The notes below the pieces were generated by a model. That model saw only the letters and a list, made by a program, of their open reading frames with translations. It had not been told where the DNA came from and did not search any database. From IMG/VR virus record IMGVR_UViG_3300028592_000004, positions 165,211-229,210 of that record: 64,000 nucleotides of DNA; one strand, given 5' to 3'. Positions 30,787-64,000 of this stretch are shown piece after piece. Made by a program: the position numbers and the translations under genes. Position 1 is the first letter of the stretch. Each line of letters begins with the position of its first letter.

Positions 30787-30789
30787 CAG

Positions 30790-30860
30790 TTACCCCGCTG
30801 GGATTCGAACCCAGACTACCGGCACCAAAGACCGATGTGCTGCCGTTACACCACAGAGTA
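30790..30860 (-). tRNA. tRNA-Gln(TTG)
   Basis: Cloverleaf, loop CT-TTG-GT, T-loop GTTCGAATC. Confidence 0.88.
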
Positions 30861-31033
30861 AGCAAAAGACCCCGTCGCATGACAGGGTCTTTCGTGTCCC
30901 GGATCGCTATCGGAATGCCGAACGCACGCAACCAGATGGCCCTTTTGGGAACCACGAGCCGAAGCTCACAGAAGACTATTCGCTTTCCGGGCAATTCCAA
31001 CGGGATCCTAGCCGACAGTTGGGGGTTGAGCAA

Positions 31034-31104
31034 TACCGCGTATGGGATTCGAACCCACCTAAGCCGTTAGAAAGACGGCTGTCCTCCCCGAAGACGAACG
31101 CGGC
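31034..31104 (-). tRNA. tRNA-Glu(TTC)
   Basis: Stem GCCGT/ACGGC, loop CT-TTC-TA, T-loop GTTCGAATC. Confidence 0.8.
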
Positions 31105-31108
31105 ATAG

Positions 31109-31195
31109 CGGAAGTCGAGGGACTCGAACCCTCACACCCTTGCGGGCCGTCCAGGTAGCAACCGGCGCCGGCAAACCAGTGGCCGGATGACTTCC
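31109..31195 (-). tRNA. tRNA-Ser(GCT)
   Basis: Loop TT-GCT-AC, long variable arm, G73. Confidence 0.8.
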
Positions 31196-31198
31196 AAG

Positions 31199-31282
31199 CG
31201 GAAAGCCGAAGAATCGAACTCCACGCGTTTTACCGCGCCCCCGGTTTTCGAGACCAGTTTGCCTCCGTTGGCGGGACCTTCC
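31199..31282 (-). tRNA. tRNA-Ser(CGA)
   Basis: Loop CT-CGA-AA, long variable arm. Confidence 0.85.
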
Positions 31283-31287
31283 GTAAG

Positions 31288-31431
31288 TGACGATGCCAGG
31301 AATCGAACCTAGTGAGCAGGCCACATTGGCAGTACCTCCCGCCGCTCTGCATGCGAGCGGACAGTCCCTTCCACCGTTGGCTGATCTGCACTGGCCATAC
31401 ACCAGTCCCTCTGCCATTGAGGATCATCGTC
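31288..31431 (-). ncRNA. tRNA-like RNA (144 nt) with ~70-nt insertion in the variable region
   Basis: Acceptor GACGATG/CATCGTC, D arm CCTC/GAGG, stem ACTGG/CCAGT with loop TGTATGG, T arm CTAGG-TTCGATT-CCTGG. Confidence 0.65.
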
Positions 31432-31435
31432 AAAG

Positions 31436-31511
31436 TAGCAGCGACAGGGATCGAACCTGCATGCACACGGGTCTGAGCCGTGCCGCTCTGTCCAACATGG
31501 CGTACGCTGCC
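31436..31511 (-). tRNA. tRNA with CAG anticodon (Leu), short variable arm
   Basis: Stem CACGG/CCGTG, loop CT-CAG-AC, 5-nt variable loop. Confidence 0.78.
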
Positions 31512-31515
31512 GTCT

Positions 31516-31785
31516 TTATCGACTGGCATCACCAGTCGCTCGCCTGTGATTACGAATCTGCTGGTGCGGTGAGGACGGCTCAGGATAGGGAACACTCGCC
31601 GACCGCACCGTCCATCCCGCTTCCCAGTTGCCATCTTCGTCACGCAGGCGAATCATGCGGCCGACGATAGCGAACTTGGCGGGAATCCAACTCGTGGTTC
31701 GCTCTAATCCACGAGGGGTTAGTCGCTCCAGGAGGCATTGACAGTACAGGTCGCGAGAACGGGATGGAGTATGAGGTGCAAACAT
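31516..31785 (-). CDS. Hypothetical protein within the tRNA cluster
   Basis: 89-aa ORF with RBS AGGAG. Confidence 0.6.
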   Translation of the reverse strand: MFAPHTPSRSRDLYCQCLLERLTPRGLERTTSWIPAKFAIVGRMIRLRDEDGNWEAGWTVRSASVPYPEPSSPHQQIRNHRRATGDASR

Positions 31786-31798
31786 GATGGTCTCCTAG

Positions 31799-31881
31799 TA
31801 CCGAGAGCCGGAGTCGAACCGACAAGATCGCAATGATGGCGAGTCTACAGCTCGCGGGGCCTTCCAATGCCCAATCTCGGT
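31799..31881 (-). tRNA. tRNA-Tyr(GTA)
   Basis: Stem GCGAG/CTCGC, loop CT-GTA-GA, long variable arm. Confidence 0.85.
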
Positions 31882-31969
31882 GGGGCGGGCCACTTCACCT
31901 GATCCGAGTCCGGGAGTGGTGTCACAAGCACCTTCCCTTCTGTCAGGCCGTAGTACCCGTACGGACGTG

Positions 31970-32039
31970 AGACGCCGGTCAGTGTCGAGCTGACCTCACC
32001 ATCGTTTGCTGCGACGGGCCATCCCGGATGGACGGCGTC
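31970..32039 (-). tRNA. Degenerate tRNA-Cys(GCA)-like gene
   Basis: Acceptor GACGCCG/CGGCGTC+U73, loop CA-GCA-AA (A33), T-loop CTCGACA, tiny D loop. Confidence 0.55.
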
Positions 32040-32109
32040 TTGTGGCTGCGACGGGCGGTAAACCGCCACCGCGACGTCTACGCGGTGTCCAAACGTCGCA
32101 GCCTTTGAG

Positions 32110-32182
32110 CACAGCCCCAGGGAATCGAACCCTGCCAATCGAATTTGGAGTTCGACTCGCCAGCCTTGGATCATTGGGCCGT
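32110..32182 (-). tRNA. tRNA-Trp(CCA)
   Basis: Stem TCGAA/TTCGA, loop CT-CCA-AA; D arm weak. Confidence 0.75.
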
Positions 32183-32188
32183 GTGAGG

Positions 32189-32260
32189 CCGGAGCGACCG
32201 GAATCGAACCGGTGACCACCGGGTTTCAACCGATGACTCTACCAACTGAGTTACGCTCCG
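32189..32260 (-). tRNA. tRNA-Phe(GAA)
   Basis: Canonical D arm (CTCAGTTGGTAGAG), loop TT-GAA-AC. Confidence 0.9.
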
Positions 32261-51753: not shown

Positions 51754-52923
51754 TCAGTTGGTCGACGGGAGGTCGACCTGTTCTCCGTCGTTACGAGCGA
51801 TCAGCTTCGCGATGACGGCGCCGTCGGTGTTCTCGCTCAGGAACCGAACGGCTCCATCAGCGAAGACAGCCTGAGCACCACCCACATGGAAGCTGTAGAT
51901 CTCGTCGTTCGGGCCACAGTTGTTGGTCGTCCACGGGCAACCCGGGGTCGGGCTGGTCGGTCCACCGGTCGGACGATTGTTGTTGTTGATCAGACGATGC
52001 GTCGAACCAGCCTGAGCCGGCGGGCCGGACACACCACTGCCGTTGTCGGGATCAGCCCACCGATTCGGGCACCGGCTGGCCGAGCCCGATCCGGAAGCGT
52101 CCTTGCAGTTGTCCGTGGTCCCACCGTTAGCGGTGGAGGCCAGGTACTTGCTGCGGATCCCGCCGTTGGCAGTGAGGTACTGCTTGCCGGCGTCTTCCGC
52201 GATCGCGACCGTGTTGCTGGTTCCGTCCGTGATCAGACCCATCGCGGTGCCGCCCAGAGACAGAGCTCCATCGCGACGCGAGTTCCGATCCGTGGACGTC
52301 GCCGGATTCCGCCGGCCGAGGGCCACCGTCGTCGCCGAGGTCCCCGTCAGGTCCGTCGACGCGATCACGATGTCGGTGTAGACGGTCGGCATGTAGTCGG
52401 TCTGACCGTACCCCATCTCATCATCGACGTAGACACCGTTGCTCGGGCAGAGCAGGGCGGCGATCTTCGTCTTGGCGGCTTCCCGGTTCCGGTACTGCGG
52501 CGAGGTCGTGACCGTGCTGGCGGCGTTGTAGTGGTACTTCAGGTCCATCGTGTTGTACACGGGCGCCTGATCGAAGTACGGCAGCAGCGACGTGAACGTC
52601 GAATGCGGATCGAACGCCGTGTCGTGCTTCGTGCCCACCCACTGACCGTTGGTGAGGGTCAGCCCCTCGGTCGCCAGCCCGGACGCCTGCGTGGCCGTCC
52701 AGTTCGTTCCTTCCCCACCACTCGGGAACCGCTTGTAGGCGGACTCGTAGTTGTGGAGAGCCAGTCCCATCTGCTTCAAATTGTTCTTGCAGGTGCTGCG
52801 ACGAGCAGCCTCGCGCGCCTGCTGGACCGCTGGCAGCAGGATTGCCACCAGGACTGCGATGATCGCGATGACCACCAGCAGCTCAATCAACGTGAAACCC
52901 CGACGCAAAGAAGAACGTGCCAT
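51754..52923 (-). CDS. DUF1559 protein with prepilin-type N-terminal cleavage/methylation motif and H-X9-DG motif
   Basis: [51 protein letters not shown]; ITDGTSNT; [14 protein letters not shown]. Confidence 0.96.
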
Positions 52924-53037
52924 CGGAAAAACCCTTGGCCTGTCACTCACAGGCAGAGGCCGTCTGAGACGGCGGATGTGGAGCGAATGCTCCAAAACAA
53001 ATGCCAGGAGTATTGCACCCCTGGCACCTGTGACTTG

Positions 53038-53717: not shown

Positions 53718-54149
53718 TCACCCAGCTCCCGGTGGAGCAGCGTCAAAGTGTGACTCATTGTCTCCTACCCGAATGCCCCGGTCTTTGAGATACCGGCGGA
53801 GTTTGACTTCCGTGCCTATGAAATAGCCCTTAACGCTGCCGACCATCATGTCCGGTGCGTTTGCGTACAGCGTGTCCAAGGACAACACCACGTCGCGTAG
53901 CAACTCCTGCTCCACAGTCAGACGGGTCAGAGGAACAGCATCCACGCCCTTGGAAGCGCGAACCTGATCCTCGACCCATCGCATCGCCATGAACGTTCGA
54001 TCCGCGACCTTCGTGCGAAAGACGCGAGTCTGAGTTCGTTTCGGGAAGTCGATCGCCGCGGTGACCGTCTTCGGCGTCGTCCAGAGCCGGACAGGAACTC
54101 CAGCCAGCTCGTAAGTTTCGTTTGGTTTCCGAGAAGGCAGTCTGTTCAC
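53718..54149 (-). CDS. Hypothetical protein
   Basis: GTGA overlap. Confidence 0.6.
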   Translation of the reverse strand: MNRLPSRKPNETYELAGVPVRLWTTPKTVTAAIDFPKRTQTRVFRTKVADRTFMAMRWVEDQVRASKGVDAVPLTRLTVEQELLRDVVLSLDTLYANAPDMMVGSVKGYFIGTEVKLRRYLKDRGIRVGDNESHFDAAPPGAG

Positions 54150-54742
54150 GTGAGCCTTTTCACAAAAACGGTTTCGTCCTCGCTGCTGAAGTCCGCGCGG
54201 AACTTTCGCCCCTTACGGACGAAGGTCGCCGACTTCTTGGGTCGACGATCCAGGACGACGACCTCCTCGCCGGTCCATGTCGTCAGGGCGGTGCCTTGGC
54301 CGTGCCGCTTCTGGTAGAAGATGCGGCCCTGACCTACTTCGCAGGTCTCGTCCAAGCCTTTGATCTCGGCTGTGCTGAGGAGCTGGTTGTGAACCTTGGC
54401 CTCCTCCGGCGTCACCGGGACCTGGCCAAAGGTCGAATCGAAGACGAGCCCGGCCTCGTTGTCGAAAAGGAAGCCGAGGTGGTGCCTCGTACCCTCCTGA
54501 ACAAAAGTGAGGAAGCCACCAGTTCGATCGAGCGGAGGAAGCTCTGGAGGTTTAACCCCGGGCAGCCGGCCGATCATAACCGCGTGCGCGATCGTCGTCT
54601 GGCGTCTTCCGGAGGCCGACATCGCGACCCAGCCAGCTTTGGCCTTTTCCAGTGACTCCGTAATGCCGGCGACGGCTTGAAGCTCCTGGATCGCGATCGG
54701 GCCTTGATCGTCATCAAAGACGTTCGGATACGTGTCAGCCAT
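54146..54742 (-). CDS. Hypothetical protein
   Basis: 198-aa ORF, RBS GAGGA. Confidence 0.7.
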   Translation of the reverse strand: MADTYPNVFDDDQGPIAIQELQAVAGITESLEKAKAGWVAMSASGRRQTTIAHAVMIGRLPGVKPPELPPLDRTGGFLTFVQEGTRHHLGFLFDNEAGLVFDSTFGQVPVTPEEAKVHNQLLSTAEIKGLDETCEVGQGRIFYQKRHGQGTALTTWTGEEVVVLDRRPKKSATFVRKGRKFRADFSSEDETVFVKRLT

Positions 54743-54932
54743 GATGGTTCCTCGGGTGAAAGTTGCGGCTCCGCCACACGGCTGGAACCATTGAACCGTG
54801 CGAGTTTAGCCTTAACTCCTGCTATAACCCTGTGATCAAGATGGATGAACTAGCGGGAGCGACTGTCTGTAAGCATGGCCCTTCTGCTGACCTTCCTGCC
54901 GGCGCACCAGTTTCCTACAGGATGTAACGCTC

Positions 54933-55077
54933 GCCAGGGCTGTGGGTGCATTGCCCGGAATCCTGGCCACTTACTCAGCGTTCCACGGGTGGTCCTGAGC
55001 GGCTAGCGCTTCAGGCCTCATCCGTGCTCGCCCCTGGCAGCGGGGCTAGAAACAGAGGTTGATTGTCAGAGCCTCTG
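54933..55077. ncRNA. Structured repeat copy A (putative TnpB/Cas12f-type guide RNA scaffold)
   Basis: Homologous to copies B-D, with compensatory stem changes. Confidence 0.75.
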
Positions 55078-55183
55078 CTCTTGGACTGTTCGGGCTTGAG
55101 TCGAAAATGGCTCGTGCCTGACTGCGACGTACAGCGGCCTGCGCAGCGGAGGAGCGTTTCTGCGTTAATCTGGCCAGCAGGGA

Positions 55184-55253
55184 CCACAACATCAGGATCG
55201 AGACGTGGTGCTAAAGGTCCTCACGTTCTACCGCCACAACATCAGGATCTAGA
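55184..55253. repeat. Direct repeat CCACAACATCAGGATC(G/T)AGA x2, period 50 bp
   Basis: 55184-55203 and 55234-55253, 19/20 identical. Confidence 0.8.
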
Positions 55254-55263
55254 TCCAAACATT

Positions 55264-55408
55264 GCCGGGGCTGTGGACACATTGTCCTGAATCCCGGCCA
55301 CTTACGCAGCGTTCCGCGAGCGGTTCCGAGCGGCGAGCGCATTCAGACCTTACTCGCGCTTGGCCCCGGTGATGGGCCTAGACATCGGGGTTGAAAGTCA
55401 GAGCCCCT
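55264..55408. ncRNA. Structured repeat copy B (putative guide RNA scaffold)
   Basis: As copy A; abuts the stop codon of 55407-55727. Confidence 0.75.
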
Positions 55409-55727
55409 ATTCGGATGCAGCAGCGACTGCCGACTTCTTGGCCTTGTGGCGGATCGCCTGGGTGACCTGGCGCTCCGTCGTGACGATGGCGTGCTTGTGG
55501 CTGGTTCGCATGGCGTCCCAGCGGCCGGCACTGATCCCGACGACAATCGCGTTCGGGTTCTGCTTCTGAACTCGCACGAGCTGCTGCTCAGCGAACTCAG
55601 CATTGCAGAAGATCAGCATCCGCCCCTTCGGATCAACGAAGGGGACCGGCTGCGGATCTGATGGAGTGAAGATGGCCCACCGGATCGAATGCGACCGGTG
55701 GCGAAGAGCGGGTTCAAACTTGGCCAT
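55407..55727 (-). CDS. Hypothetical protein; resembles 61101-61475
   Basis: SIRW...VPFVDPKGRMLI...VGISAGRW vs SIRW...IPFRDAEGKIVV...IGMGAHKW. Confidence 0.7.
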   Translation of the reverse strand: MAKFEPALRHRSHSIRWAIFTPSDPQPVPFVDPKGRMLIFCNAEFAEQQLVRVQKQNPNAIVVGISAGRWDAMRTSHKHAIVTTERQVTQAIRHKAKKSAVAAASE

Positions 55728-55770
55728 GAACTGATCCTTCAGAGGATGGAGTGAACGGAACGCAGCATCG

Positions 55771-56313
55771 TCACTCGGACGGGGCTTGTCCAGGCTCCTC
55801 GTTAGGGAGGTTCGCCTTCACCGCCGCCGCCAGGTTGTCGTAAACGTGGGCAATCCCCTCCGGCGACACGGACGAGAGCAGCACAACACGCTCGCTCATC
55901 CGGACTTCGTCTTCAGGCATGCCGGTCTGATCTTCAGCGTGCGGCAGGAGGAAGAGGATGTACTCCATATCGTCCGGCAGAATCGCCTTGAACGATTCCT
56001 CAACCACGGACGCCCAGTCGTCGCGAGTCTTGGCATCCAACTCGTTCAGGAGCGCCGGCTGACCGTCGTGGCGATAGTGCAGGTGACGTAGATACAGGCC
56101 AGCGTAGTAGATCGACATCAGCCGCGGTGGCAAGCTGCTCACAGTCATCCCGTGGAGCAGCGTCTCGCCAGTGTGCTTCTCGCCCGGTCCCGGCCGCACG
56201 CCGAAATTGAACGAGAAGTCGGTATCGGGCGGGAGCAGGTCAACAACCGCAAGCCGGATCTTTTCACCGAGCTCGCGCTGCTCCTCAGCCGACAGGTCTT
56301 TGAACGATTTCAC
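55771..56313 (-). CDS. Hypothetical protein with internal duplication
   Basis: Two similar halves (..LLPPDTDF..SSLPP / ..ILPDDMEY..SSVSP). Confidence 0.65.
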   Translation of the reverse strand: MKSFKDLSAEEQRELGEKIRLAVVDLLPPDTDFSFNFGVRPGPGEKHTGETLLHGMTVSSLPPRLMSIYYAGLYLRHLHYRHDGQPALLNELDAKTRDDWASVVEESFKAILPDDMEYILFLLPHAEDQTGMPEDEVRMSERVVLLSSVSPEGIAHVYDNLAAAVKANLPNEEPGQAPSE

Positions 56314-56585
56314 AACAAGCCTTTCGTTTTCAGGCGTTCAACGATGAAGGCCTCGCAGTCCTCTCGGGTCGCAGGGCCGAAGATGGATTTACCGAACCAA
56401 GCAGCAGCCTGCTGATCCGACTTAGCAAGCGGATGGGCTGAGCCCCGTTCGACAACGATCGTGCGTCGCGGACTAACGCCGACGACTAGAAGATGGTGTT
56501 TGTTGGCCAGCGCTTCGAGGCGCCGCATCTGCTCCTGGATCTCGGCAATCCGAGCAGACTCAGATGGGGTAAACTCCCGAGCCAT
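56310..56585 (-). CDS. Hypothetical protein
   Basis: Start moved to MAREF (RBS AAGGAG). Confidence 0.6.
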   Translation of the reverse strand: MAREFTPSESARIAEIQEQMRRLEALANKHHLLVVGVSPRRTIVVERGSAHPLAKSDQQAAAWFGKSIFGPATREDCEAFIVERLKTKGLL

Positions 56586-56619
56586 AGACTCCTTTCCGGA
56601 TTCAATACCCGCGGATTGC

Positions 56620-56847
56620 TTATCGAGGAATGATGAAGCCGATCGCAAACCCAAAAAGGAATGCAAACGCCATAAGGCCGTACTCAGACGTATCGGACGT
56701 GATCGGTTTCGGAACAGGCTTGCCCTCATCGCAGAAGGCGCACCACCAATGCTCTGCAGCCAAGTAGTGCGGAGTCGGTTCGATCTGGCAGCCGCAAGGC
56801 TTCCGGACCCACTCAATCGTTGGGGCGTCGATTGTCGTCGCGTCCAT
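56620..56847 (-). CDS. Small Cys-containing protein with C-terminal TM helix
   Basis: Start moved to MDATT (RBS GGAG). Confidence 0.5.
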   Translation of the reverse strand: MDATTIDAPTIEWVRKPCGCQIEPTPHYLAAEHWWCAFCDEGKPVPKPITSDTSEYGLMAFAFLFGFAIGFIIPR

Positions 56848-57097
56848 GCTTAGCTCCGTAGATTGCATCGTGTAATCGGATCGACAGGTACATGGCGGAT
56901 GATGCCCCGCAACCAGCCGAGAACCCGAGGGTCCAGTCGCCCTTGACCACGAGAAAGACCAGGGCGACATCCAGGAACGCCATCAGGAAGGCCGTGACAA
57001 TGACCAGGCGCATGTGTCCGCCGATGACGTTCTTGTACTGGAATCCTTTAAGGAATACAGCCACAAACGACATGACGAACGAAACGAGGTAGATCAC
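56813..57097 (-). CDS. Small membrane protein
   Basis: Three TM helices. Confidence 0.65.
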   Translation of the reverse strand: MIYLVSFVMSFVAVFLKGFQYKNVIGGHMRLVIVTAFLMAFLDVALVFLVVKGDWTLGFSAGCGASSAMYLSIRLHDAIYGAKHGRDDNRRPND

Positions 57098-57705
57098 TTC
57101 CCTTCCAGAAACTTGACCGTGTTCACCAGCACCTGGGCGAGCTGTCGTGAGATCCGGAACCGCGGCGTGTTGATGAGGATGCTGCGGAGGATGTTGCCGT
57201 TGCGATGACGCTCGCTGCTCGCCTTCCAGTCGAGGGTCATCTCCAGGATGGCCGGCAGGTTCATCTCGTTGATCGGAGAGACGTCGTTTGCCGCCTCCTC
57301 TTGGAGCCGAGCGACCAGCCGCTCCTTGACAGCCTGCGGGATATCCGTCGACCGCTCCAGCGCAGAAATATCGGAGAGCATCTCCGGATCGGGCGTACCT
57401 TCCCGGTAATGCTCGGGATGATGGTCGTTGCGGCCGTAGTGGTGATCCAGTGCTGGCTTGAGAGCCGCAAGGAACTCCTTGTACTGCGGGTCCCCGAATG
57501 TCACGCCGTCAAGCAACGGCGTGTAGACAGCGAAGAACTCCGCTTCGGGAGACTGCAACTTGGAGAGGTCATGCCTCGATGCGCGAAGGAGAAGCTCCGT
57601 CGCCATGACGCCGAGAAGGTCACGAACCCGCGAGATGTGCGCCTGGGTCTGGACTTTCGACTCCGCCAGCGCGAGCGGGGTCACTTCCGGAAGTTGACTC
57701 GTCAA
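57094..57705 (-). CDS. DUF5662-like (HD-related) protein
   Basis: HDLSKL, HHYGRNDHHPEHY, EMTLDWKA motifs. Confidence 0.8.
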   Translation of the reverse strand: MTSQLPEVTPLALAESKVQTQAHISRVRDLLGVMATELLLRASRHDLSKLQSPEAEFFAVYTPLLDGVTFGDPQYKEFLAALKPALDHHYGRNDHHPEHYREGTPDPEMLSDISALERSTDIPQAVKERLVARLQEEAANDVSPINEMNLPAILEMTLDWKASSERHRNGNILRSILINTPRFRISRQLAQVLVNTVKFLEGK

Positions 57706-58402
57706 CGAATACTCCTTGAGGTTTCAGCCGACTGATCGCACAGATGGCGTCAGCGGCCAAGACGATATCCGACAGCAAAGCGCTGTCAAAGATAATGCGA
57801 ACCGCAGGGACTTCCTGTCCGTTGCGAGGCGGCAAGGACGTTGCTCTCACCTCCAGAACAGGCAGCCACCGGAACTCGCGTGAGTGAAGCCACAGGAACT
57901 TGTCCCCGACGACCACCTGAGCAGCCGCTGCCTCGTAGATGTCTCGGCCGGGTGCCAACCCACGCTCGTACACCAGACTTGCCAAACCGTCGAGGTTGGG
58001 CACCAGCGAGGCCAGAGACTGATTCGTGCGAATGAGCTTGTCCTCCGTGCGTCGAAGGTCGTTTTGAAGCTCATAGACCAGTCCTTCGACCGCCCCACTG
58101 ACCGTATCGTCATAGGCGTCGAACTTGACGTGATCGACAGAAATCACTGCCCGCACCATTCCCGAAGGAGTGGTCTGGACGCGAATGAAGTTGATGGGCT
58201 GGAGTCCATCGTATTCGCGTGTCTCAACCCAGAACGCTTCAGCGTGAAAGAACCCTTCGAACTCTCCAGTTTGCAGCTTTACGGCCGTCTCAATGGACTT
58301 CTCGTCGAGCTGCGGTACGGCCCGAGCAAGCTCGCGGCGAAATTCGAGAGCGAGGTCGTTAGCTTCGAGCGCTGACTTGGGCAGTTTGATCTCGTCGGTC
58401 AT
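57620..58402 (-). CDS. Hypothetical protein
   Basis: 260-aa ORF, ATGA overlap. Confidence 0.65.
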   Translation of the reverse strand: MTDEIKLPKSALEANDLALEFRRELARAVPQLDEKSIETAVKLQTGEFEGFFHAEAFWVETREYDGLQPINFIRVQTTPSGMVRAVISVDHVKFDAYDDTVSGAVEGLVYELQNDLRRTEDKLIRTNQSLASLVPNLDGLASLVYERGLAPGRDIYEAAAAQVVVGDKFLWLHSREFRWLPVLEVRATSLPPRNGQEVPAVRIIFDSALLSDIVLAADAICAISRLKPQGVFVDESTSGSDPARAGGVESPDPGAHLAGS

Positions 58403-58788
58403 GGTTGGCGACTGAGCCTTTCAAAGAGGAGATCCATCTCCAGCAGGTTCTCCGGTGCCAGTTCATCCGGCACGAAGTTCCAGCGGACATGGGTGTCAAA
58501 GAAGATCACCTCGATCCGCCGGCCATATCGGGAAAGGAGGTACGTCGGTGGGCCGTTGTTGGTGGCGTCCTCAAAGCCCTCCTGGAGGAGAACCGCGGGC
58601 GTGAGTTTGACCAGGCGCCGTTCTTCCATCGCCACAAGATGGCCGGCGAGCGTCATGAGGTCACGACGCTTCTGGCTGATGTTGACGTGCGGCACGGGGC
58701 CGACGTCAGATCGGTAGGGATCCAAACCCTGGCGGCTGTCCAGCTGCCGCTTGAGTGCTTCAACGAATGCCGTTCCACGAACGATCAT
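58399..58788 (-). CDS. Hypothetical protein
   Basis: Start moved to MIVRG. Confidence 0.6.
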   Translation of the reverse strand: MIVRGTAFVEALKRQLDSRQGLDPYRSDVGPVPHVNISQKRRDLMTLAGHLVAMEERRLVKLTPAVLLQEGFEDATNNGPPTYLLSRYGRRIEVIFFDTHVRWNFVPDELAPENLLEMDLLFERLSRQP

Positions 58789-58930
58789 TCCAGTCCTGTC
58801 CTTCCTGTTGAGGCTTCTTAACCCAAGCCTGATGCTCGTACGTGTCTGCAAGGACAACGAGCACAAAGGCAAACGTGATGAATACGATCATGGCCGCGAG
58901 CACCATGAGCATTTGAATGAGAATGTCCAT
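58760..58930 (-). CDS. Small membrane protein
   Basis: RBS AGGAG before MDILIQ; one TM helix. Confidence 0.55.
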   Translation of the reverse strand: MDILIQMLMVLAAMIVFITFAFVLVVLADTYEHQAWVKKPQQEGQDWNDRSWNGIR

Positions 58931-59169
58931 AGTGCGTCGACTCCCTGATATCTGCGGATGAGACGGCCACCTCTCGTAACTGCGGGATTCTTCACCGGCA
59001 TTGTCCTGCGGGGTGCCGGCAGCTGCCTGCATGCGCCATGCTCTGCTTTCGTGAACGATGGTCCTGCACAGAACCTAGAGCCGAGACCTGCATCCATTGG
59101 GCTGAGCTGCCTCGTGCGTGTGAACCTGCCCTCCATAGCAACCTGCCGAAAGGCCTCCTAGCGAACGTC

Positions 59170-59311
59170 TCGGGGCTGTGGACACGTTGTCCTGAATCCC
59201 GACCTTTCACAGCGTTCCGCGAGTGTCTCCAGGCGGCTAGCGCTCTGGATCTGATTCGCGCTTCGCCCTTGCAGCGGGCGTAGACACAGGGGTTGATAAT
59301 CAGTGCCCCTG
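59170..59311. ncRNA. Structured repeat copy C (putative guide RNA scaffold)
   Basis: As copy A. Confidence 0.75.
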
Positions 59312-59692
59312 CTCTGGGAATTGTTCAACGTAATCTCACGTTCAGGACGTGGCACATTGTCTGCAATACGGACAGCAGACGCTGCCTAACCGGATTGTGC
59401 TGCCTTGATCCTGCGACATTCCCCGTAGACCTGCTGACGTACGGACTTCTTTCTGTCATGACACGATCGTCTGACGTGATACTGCGTCCGAGCGGAACAT
59501 CACTCGCCGTGTCGGTGCTGTTGCGTCCCTGAGGTCATTGCAGTGCGCCAGTGCCGGAAGCTGCGTCCGAACCCTAACGAGGTGTACTCGAACGTCCGAA
59601 TCTTGCCGCAATGGTATCCTGTCGCTCCTTGCAAAGCCGACACACTTCTCCAGGGACTTGCAGTCGAGTTTCAGGCGGGTGCACCGGACGTT

Positions 59693-59835
59693 TCGGGGCT
59701 GTGAGCACATTGCTCGGAATCCCGATCTCTTTCTCAGCGTTCCGCGGTCGAACCGGGGCGGCTAGCGCTCCCGGTCGACACCGCGCTTGGCCCTGGCAAT
59801 GGGCCTGATCCAAGGAGTTGAAGGTCATTGCTCCT
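59693..59835. ncRNA. Structured repeat copy D (putative guide RNA scaffold), overlapping the stop codon of the TnpB-like gene
   Basis: As copy A; occupies the position typical of a TnpB omega-RNA. Confidence 0.8.
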
Positions 59836-61126
59836 GGCTCGTCTCGCCTTCGTCGGAGGACTCTTCCTCCTTCTCCGGCGGCGTCTTGGCACGAACCACG
59901 ATCCGCTTCGCACGAGCCTTCTGTTCGATCATGGTGCCAAGCATGGCCCACGGGAACGAGGGTGCGAAGGAGTGGTCCGTATCGTCATAAACGATCTCCG
60001 CCACTTTACGGCGGGCTGCGTAGGCAACAAGTGAGGCACTCACCTGGTGGCACAGCGTCTGGAGCCGGTTCCGGTCACGCCGGGCCTTCTCCTGAACGTG
60101 AGCTTGGAACGGCTTTCCGTCCCGCCGCGGTTTCCGATACTCGGCCTTGCGGTCGTCGCTCAGTCGAGACAACTCCCGCAGGTGGGCCGCGTGCCGGTTC
60201 GAAATCATCCGGGCGTTATCGGCGTTGTAGTTCCAGATCCGCTGATCGTCCATGTCTACGCAGACCAGGAGCGAATCCTTGTCTGAGCGAACCATCAGCG
60301 TGTTGTCGGGAATGGACTCTCCCTTGATGGGGAGCCACCCGACGATCTTCGCCATCAACCGCCGGCTCGACCGGTTCCCGTTTCCGTTCTCTCGGTCCTT
60401 GTTCGCCGGCCGGTGATCGCCGGGCTTGCCTTCGATTTCCAGCAGCGCCGCCTGGCCCAGGAGCTCGGGATGCTCCATCAGCCATTCGATCGCCTTCGTC
60501 TGCCGCTTGAACTGCCGGCCGGCAGAGAGCATCAGCTCGTGCCGCACTCCGCCGACATTGGCGATCAGGAAGATCCGCTCGTCCTTGCGTTCCAGCTTGA
60601 ACCCGTCCGGCCGAATGGGAACCGGCTGCGGAAAGCGGAAGCTCGGCGGCGCAATCGCGTTTCGCCAGATCATGTCATATCGCAATTTGCGATAGCGCTG
60701 CTCGACTGACATCAGAACCGCCGAAGCGGTTCCCTTGCCGATCGTCTGCCACGATGCCAGCTCTGGTCCCATCCCGTACAGGTAGATCGGCGGCATCTTC
60801 GGCAGTTTCTCCTCGCCGGGACCGCGGACAACGTCGTTCGCCAGCAGCTTCCGGATCGCCCAGTTGCTGAGGTGAGTCACTGCCTCCTGTGCCTGCCGCA
60901 GGATCGGGCGAAAGACCTCCCAGTCCGCCGAGGCGATCGGGATCGTCATCGCGCGGATCGCGTAGGTCTTGCCCCAGCACTCCGAGCAGGTGAGCGTACT
61001 CCCAACGTTCTTCCAACCCCGCGGCGGGCGAGGCTTCCCTTTCACGGTCGGCTTGACGTTGCGCAAGGCGCCGCAGACCGAGCAAGCAATTTCGACAGTT
61101 TCAGTTGACGTTGTCGCCGTCTCCAT
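59825..61126 (-). CDS. Nuclease-dead TnpB/Cas12f-like RNA-guided protein with N-terminal zinc finger
   Basis: CSVC..CSEC; PSFRFPQPVPI; basic bridge helix ending RNRLQTLCHQVSASLVAYA; IVYDD (RuvC-II-like); FPWAMLGTMIEQKA; RuvC-I Asp position degenerate (LMVRSD); no C-terminal Zn ribbon or RuvC-III. Confidence 0.75.
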   Translation of the reverse strand: METATTSTETVEIACSVCGALRNVKPTVKGKPRPPRGWKNVGSTLTCSECWGKTYAIRAMTIPIASADWEVFRPILRQAQEAVTHLSNWAIRKLLANDVVRGPGEEKLPKMPPIYLYGMGPELASWQTIGKGTASAVLMSVEQRYRKLRYDMIWRNAIAPPSFRFPQPVPIRPDGFKLERKDERIFLIANVGGVRHELMLSAGRQFKRQTKAIEWLMEHPELLGQAALLEIEGKPGDHRPANKDRENGNGNRSSRRLMAKIVGWLPIKGESIPDNTLMVRSDKDSLLVCVDMDDQRIWNYNADNARMISNRHAAHLRELSRLSDDRKAEYRKPRRDGKPFQAHVQEKARRDRNRLQTLCHQVSASLVAYAARRKVAEIVYDDTDHSFAPSFPWAMLGTMIEQKARAKRIVVRAKTPPEKEEESSDEGETSQEQ

Positions 61127-61475
61127 TGAGCCCTCCGAAGGTAGTGAGTAGAAGTGCCTGTACCTTTGCCTTCATCTTCTCGATGATCGCGAGCCACTCG
61201 GCCTCAGTCTCGATCTCAACGTGCGGCATCTCCGACTGGAAGAGACGCCACTTATGTGCGCCCATGCCGATTCGAGCAACACCGCGATCGGCGCCAGCTT
61301 TCTGTGCGTCTTCATCGAGCCGCTGCAATATGGTGTCCGCAAGTGCCAGCGACTTCGGGACCACGATCTTCCCTTCCGCGTCGCGGAAGGGAATTTCATA
61401 ACCGCCAAGGTAACTAAGCATAAAGAACCAACGAATCGATGGCACCCCGGTTACATTGACCCTGATAGGTTCCAT
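61101..61475 (-). CDS. Hypothetical protein; resembles 55407-55727
   Basis: RBS GAGGA; overlaps the start of the TnpB-like gene. Confidence 0.7.
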   Translation of the reverse strand: MEPIRVNVTGVPSIRWFFMLSYLGGYEIPFRDAEGKIVVPKSLALADTILQRLDEDAQKAGADRGVARIGMGAHKWRLFQSEMPHVEIETEAEWLAIIEKMKAKVQALLLTTFGGLNGDGDNVN

Positions 61476-61484
61476 GACGTCCTC

Positions 61485-61518
61485 AAAAGAAAAGAGACGG
61501 CAGGAAAGTCCTGCCGTC
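61485..61518 (-). terminator. Intrinsic terminator
   Basis: GACGGCAGGA/TCCTGCCGTC stem plus TCTTTTCTTTT on the minus strand. Confidence 0.75.
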
Positions 61519-61527
61519 CCGGGATAG

Positions 61528-61956
61528 CTACTCTCCGTCAGCCAGCTTGCGGTACGCCTCGATCTGAGCGAGCTCGGCTGCGGTGAACAGCTCGGGCTGC
61601 GTCGGCTGAGGCATCCGGGCTCGCTTGTAAAGGCGAGCCAGCCAGAAGTGATCGATGTGGTAGCCGCTACGGTACGCTTCCATCGTCACCAGCTTTCCGG
61701 CTTCACGCGTGGCCGGCCAATCCGGGACCGGAACGTATTCCGAAGTCTCGGGACAGGCCAGCTTGAAGTTCGGTTGCGGTCGATTCAGTGGCCGGTTCTG
61801 AGGTTGCTTTCCCTCTTGCCGATACCACGTCGCCGCCAGAGAGGTGTGCTTCCTCATCACCAGACAAAGGCGCTTGAGGAGGGCACAGGTTTCGTAGTTA
61901 CAGGGGTGGAATCCGTACCTGGATTCCGTCTCTTTGCGTTCGGTGACCTGAGTCAT
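61528..61956 (-). CDS. Hypothetical protein
   Basis: Start moved to MTQVT (RBS GGAG). Confidence 0.65.
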   Translation of the reverse strand: MTQVTERKETESRYGFHPCNYETCALLKRLCLVMRKHTSLAATWYRQEGKQPQNRPLNRPQPNFKLACPETSEYVPVPDWPATREAGKLVTMEAYRSGYHIDHFWLARLYKRARMPQPTQPELFTAAELAQIEAYRKLADGE

Positions 61957-62305
61957 CGTTGGGTTCTCCCAATTTGAGCAGTTGATATCTCTTGAGGAGA
62001 CGCCGTGTCTCCCCACTGACAAGACCTGTGGCAATCGCTGTCGCCTCGTTATTCCGTGCCGGCTCATGGAAGAGCACGAACGGAATGTGACAGTGCTGGA
62101 GGTGGGCAGCGCAAGCATTGAGCTGCCGAAGATCCTTGACCCCACACAAAGCAAGATGGGGATGTTCTTCCCACGTCAGATTCAAGAGGTGTTTAGCCTC
62201 CAGAGCTGCGTGGACCGCCTGCACGGCCCGTTGGGGCGGCGGTAGATCTTGTCGGACGAAGATGTAGAGATACTGCGTCACTGGGAGGTGCGGTCAATGT
62301 TCCAT
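61898..62305 (-). CDS. Peptidyl-tRNA hydrolase 2 (Pth2)-like protein with in-frame UGA at codon 4
   Basis: YIFVRQDL..QRAVQAVHAA, FHEP...TAIAT; AAGGAGG 8 nt before ATG GAA CAT TGA CCG CAC CTC CCA GTG ACG, in frame; ends in TAA. Confidence 0.75.
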
Positions 62306-62335
62306 TGTGAGGTCCTCCTTCTGAAATGAACCCTG

Positions 62336-62409
62336 TGTCGGGGGCGGGATTCGAACCCGCAACCAACGGATTTGAAGTCCGGTGCTCTAACCATTTGAGC
62401 CACCCCGAC
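62336..62409 (-). tRNA. tRNA with UCA anticodon (opal suppressor; not tRNA-Sec)
   Basis: Acceptor GTCGGGG/CCCCGAC+A73, D arm GCTC/GAGC, loop CT-TCA-AA, short variable loop, T arm GCGGG-TTCGAAT-CCCGC. Confidence 0.9.
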
Positions 62410-62442
62410 AACAGGGGACTCTACGAGACTGACGACCGGCCG

Positions 62443-62889
62443 TCAATCTTCCTTGGCCGTCTGCAGCCACTCGCCGAGAGCGAGGGCCGACTCGTACGAG
62501 ACATACAGCCGCACATCCTCGCAGACGGCCAGACGGCCATCCGGGGTGCAGACGGAGACCGCAATGTTCGTGAGCTGGCAGTCGACAAGAACGACGCCAC
62601 CAAGAAGCAACTTCCTACCATCAGCACCTGTGATATCGGCGTACTGGCGGTAGAACTGCTCAAGTAAGGCCCGCGGACCGAGGACCCGCGACAAATGCAC
62701 GGCGCCATACTTCGGCGACTTCCCGGGCGAGGACAGCTGCACGGAGCCGATCCGCCGTAGCTGAACCAGCAAACCCACTCCATCCATCCACTCGGGAATG
62801 AGCATCTTCGCGTGGAAGATGTTCGGATCGGGCGGTATCGCCTTGGGACGAAAGAACGCTGCGATCCAACCAAACACACGTCGAAGCAT
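62443..62889 (-). CDS. Hypothetical protein
   Basis: RBS AGGAG. Confidence 0.6.
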   Translation of the reverse strand: MLRRVFGWIAAFFRPKAIPPDPNIFHAKMLIPEWMDGVGLLVQLRRIGSVQLSSPGKSPKYGAVHLSRVLGPRALLEQFYRQYADITGADGRKLLLGGVVLVDCQLTNIAVSVCTPDGRLAVCEDVRLYVSYESALALGEWLQTAKED

Positions 62890-62898
62890 GGCGGACTC

Positions 62899-63258
62899 CT
62901 AGTTCATCTCGGCGTGACGACGGAGGCTCCGTCTGACCATCGCGCCGAGTTCTTCGTGATCGACCCACTTTCCCCGTTCAAGGAAGCCGTCCTCCAAGTC
63001 CGACGTTCGGACGAAGAACCGGACAGTCGTCTCTCCGCCGGCCGACTCCGTCTTGACGAGAGCATCGAAGACGAGGCCCGTCATGCCGACGAAGAAGACC
63101 GGCTTCAGGTTCGTTTCCAGGACACCGTCGTACGTCTTCGAGCGGATGCGGCGAGTCCGCTTCTTGTCCTGGTACATGTCGTACGCGTTCACGAGGAGCG
63201 CGTCGCGCACGGTTTCCGTCATCGGCTTGTCGCCCTGCATCAGACAGTACATCTGCAT
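62899..63258 (-). CDS. Hypothetical protein
   Basis: RBS GAGGA. Confidence 0.65.
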   Translation of the reverse strand: MQMYCLMQGDKPMTETVRDALLVNAYDMYQDKKRTRRIRSKTYDGVLETNLKPVFFVGMTGLVFDALVKTESAGGETTVRFFVRTSDLEDGFLERGKWVDHEELGAMVRRSLRRHAEMN

Positions 63259-63278
63259 CGTGGGTTCCTCGGTTGGGG

Positions 63279-63836
63279 TTATTCGCGGATGCCACTTTTA
63301 TTCCGAGCCAGCCAGAGCTTTTCGTCAAGGTCCACCGGGTGGATCTCCAGGCGATCGGCTTCGGCCAGGAACAGCTGCGTCACCCGCTCGTATTCACGCT
63401 TGGACTGGGGCGTGATCTTCGGGACATTGTGGCCTTGCTCCGCGAGCCAGGCCAAGATGTGAACATCCAGGACCGCGTAGCGATCCCGGCGGTTCGACCA
63501 CCGCATGAAGAAGCGGCTTGTCTTCTGCTTGATCCCTTTGATGGCCTCCAGCTCCGCGACCGTACATGTGGCCAGATCGAGCTGGGCTCTCAACAGGCCG
63601 TGAAAGGCCGCGGAGTTCTTGTCGTAGTTGCCGACGCGAGCAGCCTTGAGGCAACTCACCAGCGTCGGCATCCTCTGAGGTAGGGACGCGAACCACGTCC
63701 CCTTCCAGAGACCGCGACGTTCGAGCTCTTCGAAGAGCACGATCATCTTGGCTTCTGCGAACCTCGCCGATTTGCCGGCGACGATCACCGCGTAGAGAAC
63801 CTTGTATTCCAGATCCTTTGGAAACGACCGAGGCAT
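63279..63836 (-). CDS. Helix-hairpin-helix DNA glycosylase-like protein (8-oxoG glycosylase type)
   Basis: LEAIKGIKQKTSRFF (HhH) and YAVLDVHIL. Confidence 0.8.
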   Translation of the reverse strand: MPRSFPKDLEYKVLYAVIVAGKSARFAEAKMIVLFEELERRGLWKGTWFASLPQRMPTLVSCLKAARVGNYDKNSAAFHGLLRAQLDLATCTVAELEAIKGIKQKTSRFFMRWSNRRDRYAVLDVHILAWLAEQGHNVPKITPQSKREYERVTQLFLAEADRLEIHPVDLDEKLWLARNKSGIRE

Positions 63837-64000
63837 CTTCTACCTTTTGAGCGGGTACAGCGGTTCGATCAGAACGTCGCCTGCAACCCACTTCTCCTGA
63901 GAGGTAAAACCACTCGTATATAGTGACGCAATTCCGCTGCCAATGAAGGCGTCGCTGCCGAACGCCATGTGCGGCCGGAAGATCATATCGCCCAGCAACA

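Follow-up and report, generated by a model that had tools for sequence, protein, structure and literature searches.

Nuclease-dead relatives of Cas12f and TnpB have newly been recognised as natural RNA-guided transcription factors, with partner proteins deciding between repression and activation. Inactivated Cas12f-derived TnpBs that have lost RuvC-III, and that occur with duplicated omega-RNA arrays near genes for relaxases, MobC and phage integrases, were described by Altae-Tran et al. (2023, PMC10691335), and the dCas12f proteins, which are C-terminally truncated and use single guide RNAs with 3' guides, by Hoffmann, Wiegand et al. (PMC13472631). The TldR proteins (bioRxiv 10.1101/2023.11.30.569447; PMC13418256; PMC13622181) are likewise compact, nuclease-dead members of the TnpB family, often encoded by phages next to their guide RNA; they derive from IS605-type TnpB and are paired with fliC or oppF, whose host paralog is silenced. 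Here, we analysed a stretch of 64,000 nucleotides (hereafter the window), corresponding to positions 165,211 to 229,210 and thus the final 64 kb of the IMG/VR virus record IMGVR_UViG_3300028592_000004, which encodes a TnpB-like effector, guide-RNA-like scaffolds and two small proteins, S1 and S2. The RNA-guided system is of an already described kind, namely an inactivated Cas12f-derived TnpB with omega-RNA arrays, and a search of a literature library found no paper on this particular phage family. The explanation that best accounts for the locus, to which we assign a probability of roughly 0.6, is that S1 and S2 are ancient paralogs leading two guide-RNA transcripts, that a dead Cas12f-like effector uses the RNAs in trans, and that the conserved components of the system do not include the S protein.

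The effector is encoded on the minus strand (59825..61126) as a protein of 433 amino acids (aa), for which scans of Pfam, PHROGs and NCBIfam gave no match. It has 27 homologs at 30–60% identity, and the model built by AlphaFold2 (AF2) from the homolog alignment reached a predicted local distance difference test score (pLDDT) of 87.4. Foldseek matched this model over its full length to Cas12f structures (AsCas12f, E = 4e-16), with TnpB, Cas12k and Fanzor lower in the list, while in the PDB the hidden Markov model (HMM) of the family found SpCas12f1 at 1e-10 and, at 1e-5, the natural nuclease-deactivated Cas12f 9n9c, and the PADLOC Cas12f model matched the single effector sequence at 1.8e-11. 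The description of this gene as TnpB-like in an earlier note, which had been made from the sequence alone, is in line with these structural and profile comparisons. The profile alignment to Cas12f stops at approximately residue 365–375 of chains of 422–500 residues, the alignments ending with the strand-helix-strand element behind the RuvC-II motif. Cas12f chains with nuclease activity run 50–125 residues further and include the zinc finger and the RuvC-III aspartate; past residue 413 the AF2 model of the effector has only about 20 disordered, acidic residues. No acidic residue is conserved among 28 homologs at the "VRT..D" and "YDD" positions, where the aspartate of RuvC-I and the glutamate of RuvC-II would be expected, and the sole invariant acidic residue of the family, D325, is located in a helix. 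Because the protein is truncated before RuvC-III and the zinc finger, and because the RuvC acidic positions are not conserved, it is read as a Cas12f derivative that is probably nuclease-dead. The gene differs from that of a 98.9% identical contig (L020) by 37 synonymous and 2 non-synonymous changes, a pattern indicating strong purifying selection. A genome-wide search of open reading frames (ORFs) found this one effector gene only, and scans of IMG/VR and of GTDB genome contigs gave no relatives besides the window's own record.

Guide-RNA-like scaffolds were located with a covariance model (R1) made from the four copies of the window, which found five copies in this phage, all on the minus strand. 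Scaffold D (59680..59849; 183 bits) starts 25 nucleotides inside the effector ORF, the stop codon of which lies within the scaffold; its conserved part ends at 59694, and a variable 3' tail continues from 59693 downwards. Scaffold C (59157..59324; 180.9 bits) follows 523 nucleotides later as a free-standing copy with a variable 3' tail of its own from 59170 downwards. Scaffold B (55252..55422; 173 bits) starts at the 3' end of S1, with the S1 stop codon (55407-55409) inside its first stem and its tail running from 55265 downwards, and scaffold A (54921..55090; 181.4 bits), 331 nucleotides further on, is again free-standing, with a variable tail from 54934 downwards. The fifth copy, scaffold E (genome positions 31824-31993, corresponding to L012 1501-1670; 147 bits), lies outside the window at a distance of approximately 190 kb from the effector gene, free-standing in an intergenic region 158 nucleotides after an unrelated small ORF.

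The four scaffolds of the window have approximately 150 nucleotides in common, with pairwise identities of 65–77%, and their conservation ends at ...CACAGCCC(C/T)G, beyond which the sequences differ. RNAalifold predicted 42 base pairs from these four copies, 19 of which showed compensatory changes. When 28 copies from 17 loci were aligned, 93.8% of the cells were paired (39 of the 42 pairs with compensatory changes; slid controls 33–43%), a pairing figure that is somewhat favoured by the alignment having been fitted to the covariance model. All 16 independent effector loci have at least one R1 match downstream of the effector homolog, usually with a stop-codon overlap of 16–25 nucleotides. Judged by covariation and position, the scaffolds form a structured RNA family strictly linked to the effector. 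This confirms the earlier view of the four window copies as real structured RNAs with differing 3' tails, and the pair B/A is indeed without an effector gene of its own. No scaffold copies were found in candidate host genomes, for each of which 150 candidates were scored. The copy number varies between elements: L023 has two, and the largest set seen, in a phage-like contig of 112 kb (L003 7489-10442), comprises eight scaffolds that are spaced by approximately 260–370 nucleotides and lie downstream of an effector homolog.

Compared to the described systems, the locus shares with dCas12f and the inactivated Cas12f-derived TnpBs (PMC10691335, PMC13472631, PDB 9n9c) the common Cas12f fold, the truncation of RuvC-III and zinc finger and the absence of a CRISPR array, as well as a single omega-RNA-like scaffold type that starts in the 3' end of the gene, has a variable 3' tail and occurs in multi-copy sets. 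Two of the related loci (L001 and L006) lie near relaxase or phage-integrase genes, as do those of the inactivated TnpBs. The differences are that the carrier here is a 229-kb phage with scaffolds at three places in its genome, that Pfam, NCBIfam and PHROGs do not detect the protein, that a target was not found and that many scaffold copies have a hairpin tail. The dCas12f-sigma-E systems have a conserved partner, whereas no sigma-E or helix-turn-helix (HTH) partner is seen here and the upstream gene differs from locus to locus. By analogy with TldR, RNA-guided regulation through DNA binding would be expected here too; in contrast to TldR, no fliC- or oppF-like cargo is seen, and by both structure and sequence the effector best matches Cas12f rather than ISDra2-type TnpB.

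Along the minus strand, a tRNA(UCA) gene is followed by a PTH2-like ORF, a terminator-like hairpin (61520..61494), S2 (61475..61101), the effector gene (61126..59825) and scaffolds D and C, and then by seven unannotated ORFs, S1 (55727..55407) and scaffolds B and A. It had been remarked before that each of the small genes precedes a scaffold pair, and this arrangement is confirmed, S1 leading to B/A and S2, through the effector, to D/C. The S2 ORF (61101..61475; 124 aa) overlaps the effector start by 26 nucleotides, and the strong intrinsic-terminator-like hairpin (61494..61520, minus strand; 12 pairs and a T run) is located 18 nucleotides upstream of the S2 start. Since the terminator lies directly upstream of S2 and the two genes overlap, we infer that S2, the effector, D and C are co-transcribed. 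The S1 ORF (55407..55727, minus strand; 106 aa) has its last codons and stop within the first stem of scaffold B. Each unit thus has a translated ORF that extends into the first stem of one scaffold, with another scaffold a few hundred bases further on, and because B starts in the last codons of S1 as D does in those of the effector, S1 and S2 are read as leader genes. They would be the translated leaders of two guide-RNA-bearing transcripts, S2-effector-D-C and S1-B-A, with the S1 mRNA acting as the carrier of B/A as the effector mRNA would for D/C. The single effector would most likely bind the RNAs of all five scaffolds in trans, among them those of the orphan pair B/A and of the distant E, and the structured nature of the orphan copies fits such a use by one effector. 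Like dCas12f and TldR, it would thereby serve as a non-cutting regulator that binds DNA under RNA guidance. The trans use of the orphan scaffolds, the regulatory, non-cutting activity and the history of duplication discussed below are all inferred.

The homology of S1 and S2 is supported by several comparisons. Both translations contain the motifs that the earlier note had listed, S1 with SIRW at residues 14–17, VPFVDPKGR at 28–36 and GISAGRW at 64–70, and S2 with SIRW at 13–16, IPFRDAEGK at 28–36 and GMGAHKW at 70–76. Both kinds of alignment proposed in that note, pairwise and HMM, showed similarity beyond chance. BLASTP aligned the single pair with 23% identity over 96 columns (E = 0.001), and the Smith-Waterman score of 62 compares to 24.5 ± 4.2 in 5,000 double shuffles, nearly nine standard deviations above the shuffles and reached by none of them. 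In the 229-kb genome, which has 3,259 stop-to-stop ORFs, S1 and S2 are reciprocal best hits, even when competing with much longer ORFs. A profile search of 1.84 billion proteins identified three further members (P0032, P0034 and P0035; 128–154 aa) that share the motifs IRW(F), PF.DG.(G/R)+ and MG..KW.LF with S1 and S2, and one of these, P0034 from L025, matches both S2 (6e-7) and S1 (5e-5) by BLASTP. An HMM made from the three outside sequences alone ranked S2 first (2.5e-12) and S1 second (2.1e-4) in the phage, the next ORF having an E-value of 2.4, a test that is not fully independent as the three sequences were found through a joint S1 and S2 profile. Homology is very likely because of the three-sequence profile result taken together with the shuffles. 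The paralogy claimed for the two genes therefore stands with the qualification that, at about 23–25% identity, they are ancient paralogs, S1 being the divergent one. No DNA similarity was detected between the S1 and S2 units when the upstream regions and the gene DNA were compared. S2 has relatives at 98% and 81% identity, and S1 is found in identical form in the relative L020. A word-based search with S1 and S2 returned near-identical copies only.

The distribution of the S family argues against a role as a conserved component. No S-like ORF was found with two-sequence and six-sequence profiles in 15 independent effector loci (best family-HMM E-value 1.8), the search in the long contigs L001, L003, L007, L021 and L023 covering the flanks of the effector. 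These S-free loci include those of the closest effectors, L004, L014 and L015, with 60%, 55% and 48% effector identity, respectively. The genes upstream of the effector homologs are different at every locus and mutually unrelated, among them genes for a methyltransferase and a HerA-like ATPase, genes in divergent orientation, and ORFs of 67, 71, 154, 198 and 273 aa. Conversely, neither effector HMM nor R1 matches were found beside the S genes of L024, L025 and L026; in L024 and L025 the S gene is followed by other small ORFs within the 0.5–1 kb of flank examined, and the 155-kb viral record that holds L026 (G001; 75% complete) contains no effector and no scaffold anywhere. Nor is there an S-like gene upstream of scaffold E, and the arrangement of S1 and S2 with scaffolds is repeated only in the near-identical relative L020. 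The proposal of the earlier note that the small protein belongs to the RNA-guided system is thus not upheld: linkage of its homologs to the TnpB-like gene or a scaffold was not seen elsewhere, an outcome which that note had itself named as counting against the idea. From its occurrence, the S family appears to be carried by large soil phages with or without an RNA-guided system. A new partner protein would matter for this class of regulators; as a candidate, S fails to qualify as a general component. What is documented is a family of dead effectors derived from Cas12f that goes undetected by standard family libraries, together with its covarying guide-RNA scaffold, dispersed sets of 5 to 8 scaffold copies per element in mobile elements and large phages that probably belong to Planctomycetota, and a small new phage protein family.

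The alternative that survives best is that S is a lineage-specific partner of the dead effector, as sigma-E is for dCas12f, and that S1-B-A is a cassette which has lost its effector. In this role S could, for example, link the DNA-bound complex to another factor. Both paralogs lie directly 5' of scaffold units, S2 follows a terminator and probably shares an operon with the effector whose start it overlaps, and the C-terminal tail of S1, short for the family and with scaffold-derived codons, would fit a deletion that fused S1 to the scaffold; known dead Cas12f proteins moreover work with a partner encoded upstream (PMC13472631). Such a partnership is nevertheless unlikely given the 15 effector loci without S, among them effectors 48–60% identical to this one, the S genes without effector or scaffold and the S-free scaffold E. 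In addition, scans against family libraries revealed no sigma, HTH or other signature related to nucleic acids or RNA polymerase in S, and no trace of an effector is present beside S1. A more elaborate version, in which the S proteins were recruited in this lineage so that each paralog with its own guide pair serves as a different adaptor and gives different outputs at the targets, is a speculative idea to which we give less credence still. A better candidate for a clade-specific accessory protein than S is a gene seen in one effector subclade, where homologous genes of 226–250 aa (L021 4279-4959 and L022 7184-7936; mutual E-value 1e-36), with a weak match to ParB_N, lie between effector and scaffold.

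Several points weigh against the leader-gene explanation that we prefer. Two paralogs both placed directly 5' of scaffolds would be unlikely under random placement, and they may have a lineage-specific functional tie to the system; the overlap of S2 and the effector also looks translationally coupled, as in the real partners rpoE-dcas12f. Of the outside S contigs, three have lengths of just about 1.1, 2.4 and 1.05 kb, and completeness of the 155-kb record is 75%, which limits the S genes without a system as evidence, and the RuvC-I position was judged by the family alignment and the strand order of the model instead of a residue-level superposition. Furthermore, no targets of the 3' tails were found in the phage genome, in 398 genomes from the family of the closest host-like metagenome-assembled genome or in IMG/VR, so guide function is putative. 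The phage genome contained no self-targets, and comparison of the tails to five candidate host-like genomes and to the 398 genomes of their family (Planctomycetaceae-related) gave only non-homologous matches at chance level. Finally, a clean hairpin of variable sequence is formed by the 26–30 nucleotides directly behind the conserved end in scaffold B and at several loci, which would be odd if the tail is a guide; the tails may be guides, terminators or something else. Such hairpins are present in B (window 55226-55265), where the hairpin of 30 nucleotides includes G-U pairs, and in loci L014, L015, L016, L019, L006 and L022; A, C, D and E are without them.

Two further observations concern the tails. 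When IMG/VR was searched for exact 20-mers of the tails of A, C, D and E, one match resulted, between tail D and positions 1205-1224 of L123 (IMGVR_UViG_2513237176_000001), in a tail-protein-like gene of an unrelated viral contig of high GC content; with approximately 0.2 matches expected, this is probably due to chance. Downstream of scaffold B, the minus strand carries a direct repeat of 20 nucleotides in two copies 50 nucleotides apart (55184-55203 and 55234-55253; 19/20 identical), of which the first along the minus strand is the 3' arm of the tail hairpin; the exact repeat is of 16 nucleotides (E = 0.001).

The position of both paralogs next to scaffolds would be explained most simply if a unit made up of a leader gene and scaffold had been duplicated as a segment, or moved, once long ago in this phage lineage, with no functional tie between S and the RNAs. 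Such an event is plausible, with its trace in the DNA being absent. The earlier note had gone further and proposed a duplicated cassette whose second copy lost the effector. This proposal would explain why both paralogs lie 5' of scaffolds, yet there is no DNA similarity, no effector remnant between S1 and scaffold B when the S1 3' end was compared to effector DNA, and no pairing of D with B and C with A. For the latter, orthology of the scaffolds was considered and not seen, all pairwise identities falling in the same 65–77% range. The short C-terminus of S1, which ends in scaffold-derived codons, is compatible with duplication of the whole cassette followed by effector loss.

S1 might instead be a decaying, pseudogene-like remnant of a rearrangement, with S2 as the sole working gene and the adjacency of S1 to scaffold B as a scar. 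S1 is the most divergent member of the family, its stop lies within scaffold sequence, and it is without the C-terminal tail of the family; it also lacks, as does S2, the basic N-terminus of the outside members, and its close relatives amount to the identical copy in L020. We nonetheless regard this as quite improbable, as the ORF is intact and keeps all core motifs of the family and, as far as the last helix, all of the predicted secondary structure; its identity in L020 is weak evidence in the same direction, the whole DNA stretch being identical there. That the S1-S2 similarity merely reflects chance or convergence of unrelated small proteins, as the identity of only 23% and the modest pairwise E-values might suggest, is very hard to reconcile with the shuffles, the reciprocal best hits, the retrieval of both proteins by the profile of outside members and the intermediate sequence P0034 of L025 that matches both.

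Taken together, these sequences define a small, unannotated family of phage proteins of 105–155 aa. Scans of S1, S2 and the family members against Pfam, PHROGs, NCBIfam and PADLOC gave nothing usable, and neither did a look-up of S2 by features in the ESM Atlas. The outside members (P0032, P0034 and P0035; L026 5968-6345) start with a stretch rich in Arg and Lys (e.g. KRKRRRKH), which is missing from S1 and S2. An AF2 model of S2 based on a six-sequence alignment (pLDDT 78; predicted template modelling score, pTM, 0.68) showed a small alpha/beta domain, and the fold predicted for the family is beta-beta-beta-alpha-beta-alpha-beta-alpha. Foldseek found nothing at E ≤ 0.001 for this model in the PDB. 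An exhaustive alignment with VIA-align placed Tic22 first (Z 7.1 and 6.2), in a range that the tool calls a common arrangement, and a structure search of the Atlas returned clusters of DUF3110, Tic22 and SseB with template modelling (TM) scores of 0.50–0.54; one family member also had a weak match to Pfam DUF3110 (E = 0.22). The order of strands and helices in Tic22, SseB and DUF3110 is similar to that of the S2 model, but neither sequence comparison nor Foldseek gave a significant match between them. To our knowledge, none of these families is known to occur in RNA-guided systems of phages. The weak resemblance is a lead rather than an assignment and carries no functional implication. As a best guess, S would be a small module that binds proteins and belongs to the early region of the phage.

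The record originates from a soil metagenome, is complete according to CheckV (229,210 bp) and has a G+C content of approximately 60%. A minus-strand gene in the window (51754-52995) encodes a DUF1559-type protein with a prepilin-like N-terminus, which reaches 59% identity with proteins from metagenome-assembled genomes (MAGs) of Planctomycetota and Schlesneria. By its sequence the gene is host-derived and a clue to the host, and a planctomycete host is likely because its nearest relatives are found in Planctomycetota and Schlesneria-like MAGs. The region was found only in sequencing runs of soil DNA metagenomes, with no RNA runs among those holding it, and contigs from four runs over 6,000 bases, which yielded fragments, contained no structural variants.

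Clusters of tRNA genes are common in large phages, and seven such genes (Gln, Glu, Ser, Leu, Tyr, Trp and Phe) are clustered on the minus strand at 30789-32260. A further tRNA gene (62335-62409, minus strand) is of normal size with 75 nucleotides and has the anticodon UCA; ARAGORN classifies it as a selenocysteine tRNA (SeC), and the Rfam tRNA model scores it at 73.9 bits. It resembles an opal suppressor, yet TGA is the commonest stop of the long ORFs and also ends the effector gene, and the tRNA does not appear to signal recoding of TGA. The ORF adjoining it (61898-62281) encodes a PTH2-like peptidyl-tRNA hydrolase. Across 53808-64000, the divergence between the window and its 98.9% identical relative L020 is mosaic, with almost no differences from 53808 to approximately 59800 and 3–6% divergence in the effector, a 208-aa ORF and a 127-aa ORF (59825-62281), which suggests recent recombination at the effector locus.

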